Shown here: positions 1,664 through 28,299 of the stretch, piece after piece
How the letters are laid out: each line of letters starts with the position of its first letter
How positions within the stretch are numbered: position 1 is the first letter of the stretch
DNA from: Dendrobates tinctorius
Lineage: Eukaryota
Reading direction: 5' to 3'
Length of the DNA: 64,000 nt
NCBI RefSeq assembly: GCF_039654945.1
Contig: NW_027361677.1
Coordinates: 21,700,001-21,764,000 of the forward strand
Position numbers and translations under genes: made by a program
The notes under the pieces: generated by a model
Seen by the model: only the letters and a program-made list of their open reading frames with translations
What the model was told of the DNA's origin: nothing
Database searches by the model: none

Positions 1664-1713
1664 ACATGGAGTTTGGAGACCGCGGGTATATATGAACGTA
1701 ATTGAGCACCATG

Positions 1714-1771
1714 GACCATCTCTGAAGAAGGAATCCGGTGATTCCGAAACGCGTAAGACAGCTTTTTGGTC
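1714..1771 (+). ncRNA. Type I hammerhead ribozyme in the Penelope pseudo-LTR
   Basis: CTGAAGA core 1722-1728. Stem II GGAATC-cggt-GATTCC 1730-1745. GAAA 1746-1749. Palindromic CGCG in place of stem III. TA at 1754-1755 (cleavage site). Stem I TCT/AGA plus GACCA(1714-18)/TGGTC(1767-71). Confidence 0.85.
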
Positions 1772-2284
1772 GTTTTCGTGCTCACTAGCCAGTCACGTGG
1801 TGTTCCACGTGACCGTGACGTCACGCAAGGTCCTGCACGTTTTTGCTACCTTGCCGGCTTTTTGATTTTACTCGTGCCGTTATACTCGCCGGGTGTCGGC
1901 GGCGGTCACGCCATTAGAAGGACGCTTGCTACCGGCCGGAGCAGCGTCCAATACCTGCATTCACCAACGGAACTCTAACGCTTTCAAGCTCATTTTCATC
2001 AGCATCACTACTGCTTTCAGCGTCATCTTGGCACCGGGACCCTGCTTGAGGAAGCATCCTTCGACCAGTTCCTCATTCATCTGAACAAAGGTATCGGCAC
2101 ATATACTTTGTGAACCAGCTTTACTGTAGATATTTCTTTGAAACCTCTGAATGGTATCCTGCTAGCGCAAATTATTCACTTTTAGATTTGACTTTTATTG
2201 TTGGACAAATTGGGTGGTTGTTGTCCTTATTTGCAGCTGCAGGCGGTATCATATAGGAACTTGCGCCTTTGTGCTTATGTTTTT

Positions 2285-5200
2285 ATGAAAATTTAGAAAA
2301 TTTCGCAATTTTCCAACTTTGAATTTTTATGCCCTTAAATCACAGAGATGGGGCACACAAAAAACTTAATAAGTAACATTTCCCACATGTTTACTTTACA
2401 TCAGCACAATTTTGGAACCAAAATTTTTTTTTTGTTAGGAAGTTATAAGGGTTAAAAATTGACCAGCGATTTCTCATTTTTGCAACACCATTTTATTTTT
2501 ACGGACCACATCACATTTGAAGCCACTTTGAGGGGTCTATATGATAGAATATACCCAAAAGTAACACCATTCTAAAAACTGCACCCCTTAAGGTGCTCAA
2601 AACCACATTCAATAAGTTTATTAACCCTTTAGGTGCGTCACAGGAATTTTTTGAATATGTAAAAAAAAAAAATGAACATTTAACTTTTTTTCACAAAAAA
2701 AATACTTCAGGTTCAATTTTTGTTATTTTACCAAGGGTAACAGGAGAAATTGGACTGCAAAAGTTATTGTGCAATTTGTCCTGAGTACGCTGATACCTGA
2801 TATGTGGGGGGGAACGACTGTTTCGGCGCATGGCAGAGCTCAGAATGGAAGGAGCGCCGTTTGACTTTTTCAATGCAAAATTGGCTGGAATTCAGATCGG
2901 ACGCCATGTCACGTTTGGAGAGTCCCTGATGTACCTAAACAGTGGAAACCCCCTACAAGTGACCCCATTTTGGAAACTAGACCCCCCAAGGAACTTATCT
3001 AGATATGTGGTGAGAACTTTGAACCCACAAGGGCTTTACAGAAGTTTATAACGTACAGCGGTACAACTAAAAAATCATATTTTTTCCACAAAAATGATCT
3101 TTTCACCCCCAATTTTTATTTTTCCAAGGGTAACAGGACCCTAAAAGTTATTGTGCAATTTGTCCTGAGTACGCTGATACCCCATATGTGGGTGTAAATG
3201 ACTATTTGGGAGCATGGCAGAGCTCGGAAGGGAAGCAGCGCCATTTGACGTTTTTGGCTGGAATTGAGATCGGACACCATGTCGCGTTTGGAAAGCCCCT
3301 GATGTACCAAAACAGTGGAAACCCCCCACAAATGACACCATTTTGGAAACTAGACCCCCCCAAGGAACTTATCTAGATGTGTGGTGAGCACTTTGAACCC
3401 CCCCAGTGCTTCACAGAAGTTTATAACGCCCAGGCGTGAAAATAAAAAAATCGTATTTTTTCCACAAACATGATCTTTTAGTCACCAATTTTTTCATTTT
3501 CCCAAGGGTACCAGGAGAAATTGGACCCCAAAAGTTGTTGTCCAATTTGTCCTGAGTACGCTGATACCTCATATGTGGGAGAAAACTACTGTATGAGCAC
3601 ACCTCGGGGCTCGGAAGGGAGGGTAGTGACGTTTTGGAATGCAGACTTTGATGGATTGGTCTACGGGTGTAATGTTGCATTTGGAGAGCCCCTAATGTAG
3701 CTAAACAGTGGAAACCCCCAACAAATGACCCCATTTTGGAAACTAGACCCCCCACGGAACTTATCTAGATGTGTGGTGAGCACTTTGAACCCCCCCAGTG
3801 CTTCACAGAAGTTTATAACGCCCAGGCGTGAATAAAAAAATCGTATTTTTTCCACAAACATGATCTTTTAGTCACCAATTTTTTCATTTTCCCAAGGGTA
3901 CAAGGAGAAATTGGACCCCAAAAGTTGTAGTCCAATTTGTCCTGAGTACGCTGATACCTCATATGTGGGAGAAAACTACTGTATGAGCACACCTCGGGGT
4001 TCGGAAGGGAAGTAGTGACGTTTTGGAATGCAGACTTTGATGGATTGGTCTACGGGTGTAATGTTGCATTTGGAGAGCCCCTAATGTAGCTAAACAGTGG
4101 AAACCCCCAACAAATGACCCCATTTTGGAAACTAGACCCCCCACGGAACTTATCTAGATGTGTGGTGAGCACTTTGAACCCCCAAGTGCTTCACAGAAGT
4201 TTATAACGCTTGGGCGTGAAAATAAAAAAATCATTTTTTTTCCACAAAAATGATATTTTTGCACCCAATTTTTTATTTTCCTAAGGGTAACAGGAGAAAT
4301 TGGAGCCCAAAAGTTGTTTTGCAATTTGTCCTGAGTATGCTGATACCCTATATGTGGGGGTAAATCACTGTTTGGGCGCATGGCAGAGCTTGGAAGGGAA
4401 GGAGCACCATTTGACTTTTTCAACGCAGAATTGGCTGGAATTGAGATCAGACGCCATGTTGTGTTTGGAGAGCCCCTGATGTGCCCAAACAGTGGAAACC
4501 CCCCAATTATAACACCAAGCCTAACCTCAACACACCCCTAGCCCTAACCCTTAATGGGAAAATGGAAATAAATACATATTTTTATTTTATTATTTTTCCC
4601 TAACTAAAGGGGTGATAACGGGGGTTTGATTTACTATTTATGGCGGTTTTTATATTTGGCAGCTGTCGCACGCTAAAAGACGCTTTTTATTGTAAAAATA
4701 GTTTTTGCATCACCACATATTGAGAGCTATAATTTTTCCATATTTTGACCCACCGAGTCATGTGAGGTCTTATTCTTTGCGGGACGAGTTGACGTTTTTA
4801 TTGGTACCATTTTTGGGCACGTGACATTTTTTGATCGCTTTTTATTCCGATTTTTGGGATGCAGAATGAACAAAAACCAGCGTTTCATGAATTTCTTTTG
4901 GGGGGGTGCGTTTACACCGTTCCGTGTGCGGTAAAATTGATTAGGCGGTTTTATTCTTCGGGTCAGTACGGTTACAGCAATACCTCATTTATGTCTTTTA
5001 TGTTTTGTTGGTTTTTTGCAATGAAAACCATTTTATATAAAAAATTATTTTTGCATTGTTTTATTCTGCGAGCTATAACTTTATTTTTTTGCGGATGATG
5101 CTGTATGGCGGCTCGTTTTTTGCGGGACAAGATGACGTTTTCAGCGGTACCATGGATATTTATATGCGTCTTTTTGATCGCGCGTTATTGCACTTTTTGT

Positions 5201-7536: not shown

Positions 7537-10500
7537 CCCCTTACCTACAATGGACGTAATATTCCGTCCATGTGACCCTGGACCTAATTACCATGGACGG
7601 AATATTACGTCACAGCGATCAGCGGCGCCCACGTGCTGATTATCACAGCTGACACCCGGCACAATGTGTCAGGGGCGGTGACGGACCGCCCCCGACACGT
7701 TAACCCCTTGCATACCGCGATCAAACACGATCGCGGTGTACCGGGGGTTAAAGGGAAGCATCGGCAGGGAGGGGGCTTCCCTGAGCCCCCCACGGCAGCG
7801 CAATGTGCAGCGCTGCTGCGGGGGGCTCCTTTCCTGCAGGTCCCCGGATCCAATATGGCGACGGGGACCTCCGGGGGCCTGCAGGAAGCTGGCTTCCTCA
7901 GTGCCTGCAAAGCGCAGGCATGAGGAAGCCTGTGCAGTGCCTGTGACAGATCGCTGATCTGTCACAGTGATCTGTGATGTGACAGATCAGCGATCTGTCA
8001 CAGGACAGATATGTCCCCCCTGGGACATTGTAATAAAGTAAAAAAAAAAAAAGTGTAAAAATAATTTTTAAAAAATCGCTAAATAGATAAAAAAATAAAT
8101 AAATAAAAATTCCCCAATAAATTCATTTTTTGGAAATAAAAAAAAACAAAACAATAAAAGTACACATATTTGGTATCGCCGCGTCCGTAACGACCCGCCC
8201 TATAAAACTGTCCCAATAGTTAACCCCTTAAGCGAACCCCTTAAAAAATAAAAAACGAAGCAAAAAATGATTTATCATACCGCCGAACAAAAAGTGCAAT
8301 AACGCGCGATCAAAAAGACGCATATAAATATCCATGGTACCACTGAAAACGTCATCTTGTCCCTCAAAAAAAACGAGCCGCTACACAGCATCATCAGCGA
8401 AAAAATAAAAAAGTTATATCTCGCAGAATAAAGTGATGCAAAAATAATTATTTTTTATATAAAATTGTTTTCATAGCATAAAACCGCCAAAACATAAAAA
8501 AAGACATAAATGAGGTATCGCTGTAACCGTACAGACCCGAAGAATAAAAGCGCCTTATAAATTTTACCGCACCCGGAACGGCGTGAACGCACCACCCAAA
8601 AGAAATTCATGAAACGCTGGTTTTTGTAAATTCTGCGTCCCAAAAAACAAAATAAAAAGCGAACAAAAAATGTCACGTGCCCGAAAATGGTACCAATAAA
8701 AACGTCAACTCGTCCCGCAAAAAATAAGACCTCACATGACTCGGTAGGTCAAAATATGGAAAAATTATAGCTCTCAATATGTGGTGATGCAAAAACTATT
8801 TTTACAATAAAAAGTGTCTTTTAGCGTGTGACAGCCGCCAAACATAAAAACCGCCATAAATAGTAAATCAAACCCCCGTTATCACCCCCTTAGTTAGGGA
8901 AAAATTATAAAATTAAAAGAAAATGTATTTATTTCCATTTTCCCATTAGGGCTAGGGTTAGGGCTGAGATTAGGGTTAGGGGTGTGTTGGGGTTAGGGTT
9001 GGAGTTAGAATTAGGGGTTTCCACTGTTTGGGCACATCAGGTGCTCTCCAAAAGCAACATGACACCCGCAGACCATTCCATCAAAGTCTGCATTCCAAGA
9101 CGTCACTACTTCCCTTCCGAGCCCCGACGTGTGCCCATACAGTAGTTTTCTCCCACATATGGGGTGTCAGCGTACTCAGGACAAATTGGACAACAACTTT
9201 TGGGGTCCAATTTCTCCTGGTACCCTTGGGAAAATAAAAAATTGGTGACTAAAAGATCATGTTTGTGGAAAAAATACGATTTTTTTATTTTCACGCCCAG
9301 GCATTATAAACTTCTGTGAAGCACTGGGGGGTTCAAAGTTCTCACCACACATCTAGATAAGTTCCTTGGGGGGTCTAGTTTCCAAAATGGTGTCATTTGT
9401 GGGGGGTTTCCACTGTTTTGGTACATCAGGGGTTTTCCAAACGCGACATGGTGTCCGATCTCAATTCCAGCCAAAAACGTCAAATGGCGCTGCTTCCCTT
9501 CCGAGCTCTGCCTTGCGCCCAAATAGTGGTTTACCCCCACATGTGGGGTATTAGCGCACTCAGGACAAATTGCACAATAACTTTTAGGGTCCTGTTACCC
9601 TTGGTAAAATGAAAATTGGGGGTGAAAAGATCATTTTTGTGGAAAAAATGATTTTTTTAATTGTACCGCTGTACGTTATAAACTGTGAAGCCCTTGTGGG
9701 TTCAAAGTTCTCACCACATATCTAGATAAGTTCCTTGGGGGGTCTAGTTTCCAAAATGGGGTCACTTGTGGGGGGTTTCCACTGTTTAGGTACATCAGGG
9801 GCTCTCCAAACGTGACATGGCGTCCGATCTGAATTCCAGCCACTTTTGCATTGAAAAAGTCAAACGGCGCTCCTTCCCTTCTGAGCTCTGCCATGCGCCG
9901 AAACAGTCGTTCCCCCCCACAAATCAGGTATCAGCGTACTCCAGACAAATTGCACAATAACTTTTGCAGTACAATTTCTCCTGTTACCCTTGGTAAAATA
10001 AAAAAAATGAACCTGAAGTATTTTTTTTGTGAAAAAGTTAAATGTTAATTTTTTTTTTAAATATTCAAAAAATTTCTGTGACGCACCTAATCGGTTAATA
10101 AACTTCTTGTATGTGGTTTTGAGCACCTTAAAGGGGTGCAGTTTTTAGAATGGTGTCACTTTTGGGTATTTTCTATCATATAGACCCCGCAAAGTGGCTT
10201 CAAATGTGATGTGGTCCGTAAAAATAAAATGGTGTTGCAAAAATGAGAAATCGCTGGTCAATTTTTAACCCTTATAACTTCCTAACAAAAAAAAATTTTG
10301 GTTCGAAAATTGTGCTGATGTAAACATGTGGGAAATGTTACTTATCAAGTTTTTTGTGTGCCGTATCTCTGTGATTTAAGGGCATAAAAATTCAAATTTG
10401 GAATATTGCGAAATTTTAAAAATTTTCGCCAGATTTCCATTTTTTTCAGAAATAAACGCAAGTTATTTGAATGAAATTTTACCACTAACATGAAGTACAA

Positions 10501-14778: not shown

Positions 14779-28299
<13,521 letters not shown>

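Follow-up and report, generated by a model that had tools for sequence, protein, structure and literature searches.

In a 64,000-nt stretch of the Dendrobates tinctorius genome (hereafter the window, to which all coordinates refer), a short sequence with the core of a hammerhead ribozyme lies just downstream of a retroelement reading frame. This locus raises the question of whether the motif is a genuine ribozyme that belongs to the element and, if it is, how it would cleave. A first-pass annotation, made from the sequence, had proposed an intact, cleavage-competent hammerhead that processes tandem transcripts of a Penelope-like element. Here, we follow up that proposal by dissecting the motif and its host element, by searching for homologous copies in other frogs, and by weighing the readings that compete with it.

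The motif follows the ORF of a Penelope-like element

The window begins inside an ORF (2-1663, + strand; stop codon TAA at 1661-1663) whose frame is open for the C-terminal 553 codons of a Penelope-like protein with a reverse transcriptase (RT) and a GIY-YIG endonuclease. The ORF runs off the left edge of the window, and the 5′ pseudo-LTR lies beyond it. A word search returned 275 relatives of the ORF, the best of which are frog proteins (35-58% identity) that are named RT- or GIY-YIG-domain proteins and whose precomputed Pfam matches include PF00078 (RVT_1), PF01541 (GIY-YIG), PF26215 and PF28514. The ORF also aligns end to end with residues 183-728 of the axolotl protein P0024 (E 4e-109) in an alignment that covers the FYxLPKxHK, FIDDI and GIY...YIG motifs, and the window ORF itself contains FIDDI and GVIY...YIG. 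Against a local Pfam library, P0024 matched GIY-YIG above the cut-off and RVT_1 weakly. The window ORF had no match in this local copy, which is missing PF26215 and PF28514 and in which RVT_1 and GIY-YIG are weak even for controls, and a sequence search of the PDB returned nothing relevant. Judged by its sequence, the element has the arrangement that defines the Penelope-like class, a telomerase-like RT followed by a C-terminal GIY-YIG endonuclease in a single protein. A CxxCxxC linker ahead of the endonuclease suggests, going by the description in PMC8557442, that the element is Neptune-like. In two related frog elements, a second ORF of 447-492 codons lies upstream of the RT/endonuclease ORF (L008:1304-2782 and L004:229-1572); neither of these upstream ORFs had a Pfam match.

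The CUGA box of the motif begins 58 nt past the stop codon of the window ORF and on the same strand, which places the hammerhead directly 3′ of the Penelope ORF, as had been proposed. The 3′ end of the element falls somewhere between 1785 and about 2288, in a region with no alignable similarity to other frogs' loci beyond the ribozyme. A blastn search of positions 1-2400 against the rest of the window revealed no further copies of the element and only a repeat at 2287-2394. This is part of a very high-copy interspersed repeat at 2288-2600, which starts near 2288, has a second window copy at 10320-10427 (-) that is 93.5% identical, and reaches a summed contig depth in the thousands in three small public contig-only runs. 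Downstream of it, a tandem array of ~4.8 copies of a 384-393-bp unit (2670-4540; 70-98% identity) is unrelated to the Penelope-like element.

The motif has a complete core and a palindrome in place of helix III

We read the sequence of 1500-2000 directly and found every core element that the first-pass annotation had listed, namely CUGAAGA, a perfect 6-bp stem II, GAAA, CGCG and UA, in that order within 1714-1771 (+). The catalytic box CUGAAGA (C3 to A9) occupies 1722-1728 (+) and is followed by a single unpaired A at 1729, between A9 and G10.1. Helix II is a hairpin at 1730-1745 (pair probability 0.93) in which GGAAUC (1730-1735) and GAUUCC (1740-1745) form six perfect base pairs around a CGGU loop, one of them G10.1-C11.1 (G1730-C1745). 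The GAAA box (G12 to A15.1; 1746-1749, +) is followed by CGCG (1750-1753, +), U1754 and A1755. Every conserved position of the core (C1722-A1728, G1746-A1749, U1754 and A1755) is canonical, and standard hammerhead numbering predicts the scissile bond 3′ of A17, within the triplet GUA, at 1755/1756 (+).

Helix I is interrupted. Its core-proximal segment pairs UCU (1719-1721) with AGA (1756-1758), and an 8-nt bulge on the 3′ side (1759-1766) separates these 3 bp from a middle segment of 5 bp in which GACCA (1714-1718) pairs with UGGUC (1767-1771; pair probability 0.92). Direct reading thus confirms the 3+5 bp stem I that had been described. Past an internal loop at 1772-1777, 1703-1709 and 1778-1784 form an outermost segment of 7 bp (RNAfold ensemble pair probability 0.999), so that the 3′ strand of helix I spans 1756-1784. 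Neither this outer helix nor the unpaired A1729 was part of the first-pass annotation; with the outer helix counted, the structured domain is 1703-1784 (+).

Helix III is represented by ACGCGU (1749-1754, +), which is its own reverse complement. Because the tract is self-complementary, one copy is unable to close helix III, whereas two copies can do so with 6 bp.

A strict descriptor matches the window once, at the hammerhead site

The motif might be a chance resemblance or a dead relic, and the loose pattern CTGANGA..GAAA..TH does occur 8 times in the window against 4.6 expected, which is not significant. The other core-pattern matches, at 1976-2002 (-), 42594 (+), 45577 (-), 58690 (-) and 63701 (+), come without stem II or palindrome, and we rejected them as chance. 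We then used a descriptor built from other frogs' copies only, with the window copy excluded. To match it, a site must have 3 base pairs in helix I, the CUGANGA box, the extra A followed by G10.1, a helix II of 5 bp or more, GAAA, UH and, between these last two, an insert of 4 or 6 nt that is palindromic. This full descriptor matched the window exactly once, at the hammerhead site, where 4e-7 matches are expected per window (~0.03 per 10 Gb), and it had 0 matches in 200 shuffles. The descriptor test stands in for a leave-one-out model; the MAFFT alignment made without the window sequence was also mis-registered.

The lack of an Rfam match would also fit a chance or relic origin, and an Infernal search against Rfam had been named as a check for this motif. 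At the gathering score, the whole window contained no hammerhead and no other Rfam family, and searches of 301 nt and 101 nt around the motif at E up to 10 found no hammerhead either. Yet at E up to 5 the search was equally blank for seven control loci that hold nine homologous Penelope-like hammerheads, and the check therefore decides nothing. Since the positive controls were missed too, the Rfam models do not cover this subclass, and because they expect a helix III hairpin, their negative result is silent on the window copy. The adjoining ORF, open for 553 codons, also argues against a relic.

Homologous hammerheads in other frogs keep the core and covary in the stems

We fetched genomic loci via proteins related to the window ORF and found the same architecture beside or flanking the ORF in six other frog species: Ranitomeya imitator (L002, L003), Ascaphus truei (L005, L007), Xenopus laevis (L006), Hyla sarda (L008), Rhinoderma darwinii (L009) and Bufo bufo (L010). 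The CUGA and GA of the catalytic box and the GAAA box are invariant among these homologues, and the unpaired A after A9 is present in 10/10. The extra A, G10.1 and GAAACGCGU are kept in all homologues, while the sequences of helices I and II differ. Blastn of the 3′ region against the other frogs' loci found no alignable similarity except the ribozyme, indicating that the ribozyme alone is conserved in the 3′ regions.

We next asked how often the stems pair. We counted pairs with registers fixed by the invariant boxes and nothing fitted, because the alignment produced by a covariance model built on the frog sequences (model R1) kept the mis-registered stem II gaps of MAFFT. Across nine distinct sequences and eight positions (5 helix II and 3 helix I pairs), the anchor-defined pairs form in 72/72 cells, with 17 pair types beyond the first. 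Pairing was 100%, compared to 57% in shuffles and 38-51% when partners were slid by one or two places, and the covariation score was 1.24 vs 0.28. Sequences had been picked by a filter that asked for 4 bp or more in helix II but for nothing in helix I; the proximal helix I pairs form in 27/27 cells across the 9 homologues with 3-4 pair types each, which was matched by 0/5000 shuffles. In helix II, every homologue forms pairs 1-5, and each position shows 2-4 pair types. Furthermore, RNAalifold recovered helices I and II unaided from a plain MAFFT alignment, with compensatory double changes in 7/10 pairs. A lack of stem covariation among genomic copies had been set down beforehand as grounds for rejecting the proposal, and among the homologous frog elements the covariation is there.

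The interruption of helix I recurs as well. A distal closing helix of 8-9 bp lies past an internal loop in L002, L003, L005 and L010 (each p <=0.06 vs shuffled flank), and the corresponding value for the 7-bp outer segment of the window copy is p = 0.08. Because the distal helix recurs, we regard the interrupted helix I as a family trait; its loop sequences are not conserved.

Model R1 also detected copies outside its training set, in L011, L001 and L002. Among 80 more distant metagenomic Penelope-like loci, we found 16 further minimal hammerheads, and the U3-A8 core variant described in 2014 is among them. Within the reach of sequence analysis, covariation and the descriptor test refute the chance or relic reading, which we consider extremely improbable, and the motif is very probably a genuine, selected hammerhead that belongs to a Penelope-like element.

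Some frog copies depart from the canonical core. The copies at L011:6635-6675 (+), at its inverted partner 2720-2761 (-), and at L001:2699-2741 (+) have intact helices and the core box AUGACUA, in which A3 and U8 replace C3 and G8 and a Watson-Crick 3-8 pair is preserved; this resembles the U3-A8 variant of 2014 in the opposite orientation. The copy at L003:5940-5982 reads CUGACUA and is altered at position 8 only. In the L001 copy, GAAA is in addition replaced by GUAA and position 17 is a G, and this copy is probably dead. Within the window, isolated GAAACGCGU sites occur at 16523 (-), 20131 (+) and 27437 (-) without a CUGANGA box or a clear helix II, although the site at 20131 has a possible 6-bp helix I (GUCCAU/AUGGAC). 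Model R1 detected none of these three sites at E up to 1, and they are likely old relics.

The hammerhead probably has a long association with the ORF

A genuine hammerhead could still be a separate selfish passenger, akin to the non-coding retrozymes of frogs, that is carried in the pseudo-LTR and exploits the Penelope enzyme while doing nothing for the element. It has been suggested that hammerheads may 'simply parasitize' these elements (PMC8557442), and Xenopus retrozymes were found to be sister to Penelope-like pseudo-LTRs (preprint 10.64898/2026.07.22.740005). The placement of the motif argues against such a passenger. L002 is the closest relative that we retrieved, and its protein is only 58% identical to the window ORF, but the spacing from stop codon to CUGA box is exactly 58 nt in that element as well; identical spacing at this level of protein identity points to long co-inheritance with the ORF rather than repeated capture. 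In addition, 15/16 of the metagenomic matches lie on the ORF strand, so that the motif is found almost only in that orientation. We thus consider the passenger reading quite improbable and favor a hammerhead that is part of the element. In more distant frog relatives, the motif is 230-1,470 nt past the ORF.

Copies also occur as pairs. Direct pairs flank the ORF one unit apart in L005 (5,946 nt) and L008 (5,632 nt), and inverted pairs are found in L002 and L007; both tandem and inverted layouts are known for Penelope-like elements (PMC8557442).

The palindrome suggests cleavage as a dimer

A palindromic insert of the ACGCGU type has been tied to dimer action (PMC4209133; PMC6765202), and the dimer model is reviewed in PMC6765202, which cites Lünse, Weinberg and Breaker for dimer cleavage. 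When two copies of 1700-1790 were folded with RNAcofold, the dimer reached -56.7 kcal/mol vs -48.4 for separate monomers (2 x -24.2), and its minimum includes an intermolecular ACGCGU helix together with both helix II hairpins. A helix I in cis with a helix III in trans is not scorable as a nested structure. In the thermodynamic ensemble, the probability of the 3 core-proximal pairs of helix I is only 0.01, and fold stability is not above that of shuffled sequence, with z-scores of -0.2 (58 nt) and -1.2 (91 nt). The antisense strand is equally stable, and thermodynamic stability does not discriminate.

We propose that a single copy would be inactive, with helix III unable to close. With a second copy nearby, either on a different RNA or in the 5′ pseudo-LTR part of the same read-through transcript, both ACGCGU tracts would pair into a 6-bp helix III, and each core would then cut after A17 (A1755 here), probably slowly and aided by the element's own protein. 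The products would have 2′,3′-cyclic phosphate and 5′-OH ends, and the transcript would be trimmed towards unit length. On balance, we think it likely that 1703-1784 (+) is a minimal type I hammerhead of the 3′ pseudo-LTR of a Penelope-like element, cleaving as a dimer. That the window copy would cleave by this mechanism in the animal is a narrower claim, to which we give slightly less than an even chance. A contact between the helix I bulge and loop II, which had also been put forward, is speculation.

Of the earlier proposal, an intact type I hammerhead with a palindrome, Penelope-like and on the ORF strand, is borne out by sequence and covariation, while the link from palindrome to dimer comes from the literature. 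The term 'cleavage-competent' has to be tempered in light of published weak cleavage and of protein dependence in Anolis: in vitro cleavage of minimal hammerheads is weak even in dimers or trimers (PMC4209133), and the hammerhead of an Anolis element cleaves only with the element's protein (PMC11167929).

Moreover, catalytic mutants of the Anolis element insert as wild type in vitro, and no RNA-seq ends were seen at the cut site (PMC11167929). These results, along with the need for bound protein, lend themselves to a reading in which the motif is a conserved RNA module whose main job is not cutting and whose cleavage is a weak side activity. Such a module could be tied to the adjacent promoter, or it could give the element protein a structured landmark near the pseudo-LTR for recognizing the template or assembling the RNP. 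The role of the hammerhead in these elements has been stated to be unclear, and clades without a hammerhead thrive (PMC8557442); the fixed distance between TATA box and core in the frog clade, described below, ties the motif to the transcription start and not to tandem processing. However, the catalytic nucleotides are all invariant across the frog homologues while the stems vary, which a protein-binding hairpin would not need, and the palindrome at the position of helix III is kept too. We therefore regard the module reading as unlikely and retain the dimer-cleaving hammerhead as the preferred one.

A TATA-like box lies at a fixed distance from the hammerhead in frogs

A TATA-like box (TATATA; 1687-1692, +) lies 35 nt upstream of the CUGAAGA box in the window, and such a box is found ~35 nt upstream of the hammerhead core in 11/11 frog Penelope-like elements. 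A strict TATAWA begins at -34 to -39 in 6/11 independent frog hammerheads (the window copy, L002, L005, L008, L009 and L001), and in the other five copies TTTAAA, ATAAAA, TATTTAA or ATATAT stands in its place. A/T occupies positions -35 to -31 in 10-11/11 copies (probability ~5e-9, or 5e-7 once 90 possible offsets are taken into account). A dinucleotide CA is seen repeatedly at -6 to -4 from the CUGANGA box, five copies have CCAAT boxes 20-40 nt further upstream, and several have an E-box or TGACGTCA downstream. Among 12 distant Penelope-like hammerheads from metagenomes, the TATA spacing is not kept, and it is thus a feature of the frog clade at most.

As a lead, this geometry predicts that transcription starts inside the 5′ strand of helix I, in agreement with the report that the pseudo-LTR holds the transcription start site (PMC6765202). 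In contrast to the frog copies with their TATA-like box, the promoter of D. virilis Penelope is TATA-less, and 46 nt plus a 75-nt intron separate its start from the ribozyme downstream (PMC2377424; PMC4209133). Our literature search did not find hammerhead, TATA and Penelope together in a relevant sense.

We tentatively extend the lead to a ribozyme that, in the frog clade, is hard-wired to a core promoter (TATA 34-39 nt and CA 4-6 nt upstream). Transcription from the pseudo-LTR would start in the helix I 5′ strand and make the ribozyme the first ~40 nt of the RNA. The promoter-proximal copy would then lack the outer helix I segments that the 3′ read-through copy has, which would make the partners on a single transcript unequal. 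With the capped leader and the 3′ run-off cut away, the product would be an exact unit-length RNA, from cut site to cut site, that is uncapped and ligatable. Taken as a whole, this reading is possible but rather unlikely.

Downstream of the ribozyme, the pseudo-LTR contains a CpG-rich cluster at 1791-1830 (+) with two inverted CACGTG E-box motifs and a TGACGTCA palindrome. The CpG observed/expected ratio is 1.3-1.4 over 1651-1950, and the CACGTG and TGACGTCA motifs lie 39-68 nt past the cut site. Related motifs occur in other copies, with CACGTG (CCACGTGAC) at +44 in L002 and TGACGTCA at +38 and +84 in L003 and L005. In the pseudo-LTR, the motifs at 1791-1830 may function as internal promoter or enhancer sequences.

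Comparison with known hammerheads

It has been known since 2014 that Penelope-like elements, those of frogs among them, have hammerheads in their pseudo-LTRs, and another such copy is of little importance in itself. The window copy is nevertheless a clean and apparently young example, with an open ORF, an intact core and undepleted CpG. With its covarying homologues from seven frog lineages, it could serve as the starting point for a covariance model of this subclass, which Rfam misses. If the fixed TATA-ribozyme spacing is a true start marker, it bears on what the hammerhead does for these elements.

The closest known system is the minimal hammerhead, which Cervera and De la Peña defined in 2014 in metazoan Penelope-like pseudo-LTRs, counting ~9,000 such motifs in Xenopus tropicalis (PMC4209133). 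Its hallmarks are a single unpaired nucleotide that follows A9, the pair G10.1-C11.1, an extended helix II, a helix I that is short and whose loop 1 and closing stems are not well defined, and a palindromic 15.2-16.2 (PMC4209133). The motif described here shares the CUGANGA/GAAA/UH core, the unpaired nucleotide between A9 and G10.1 (A1729), the G10.1-C11.1 pair (G1730-C1745) of a helix II that is 6 bp long in the window copy (5-8 bp in the class), and the short helix I whose loop or closing stem is poorly defined. It also shares the palindrome that replaces helix III, with ACGCGU having no stable helix III of its own, as well as the occurrence in amphibians and, as far as the 3′ copy in the window shows, the pseudo-LTR location on the ORF strand. 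With regard to the three helices of a hammerhead, helices I and II covary and helix III is present only as a palindrome for pairing in trans. The pseudo-LTR location is seen in the window as a 3′ copy on the ORF strand beside the ORF, and in L005 and L008 as direct flanking pairs. Nothing essential differs between the window motif and this class. In detail, helix I of the window copy is closed by two further segments, of 5 and 7 bp, and the motif sits closer to the stop codon (58 nt) than in distant frog relatives (230-1,470 nt past the ORF). At the level of sequence, where it has all of the features that define membership, the window hammerhead is a member of this already-known class.

The Poseidon element PAc of Anolis carolinensis (PMC11167929) is likewise a vertebrate Penelope-like element with a type I hammerhead in its pseudo-LTR that lacks a helix III of its own. 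Unlike the window ribozyme, which follows the stop codon, the PAc ribozyme overlaps the start codon of the ORF; the two placements are equivalent in a tandem layout only if the pseudo-LTR boundary differs. Finally, amphibian retrozymes and newt satellite 2 (Rfam Hammerhead_1) resemble the window motif in their type I topology, short palindromic helix III and proposed dimer cleavage. In their hammerheads, helix III has 1-2 bp and a loop of its own, helix II has 4 bp, helix I has 6 bp, and the loop-loop contacts are conserved; Rfam detects these hammerheads, whereas the window motif goes undetected and belongs to a coding element.
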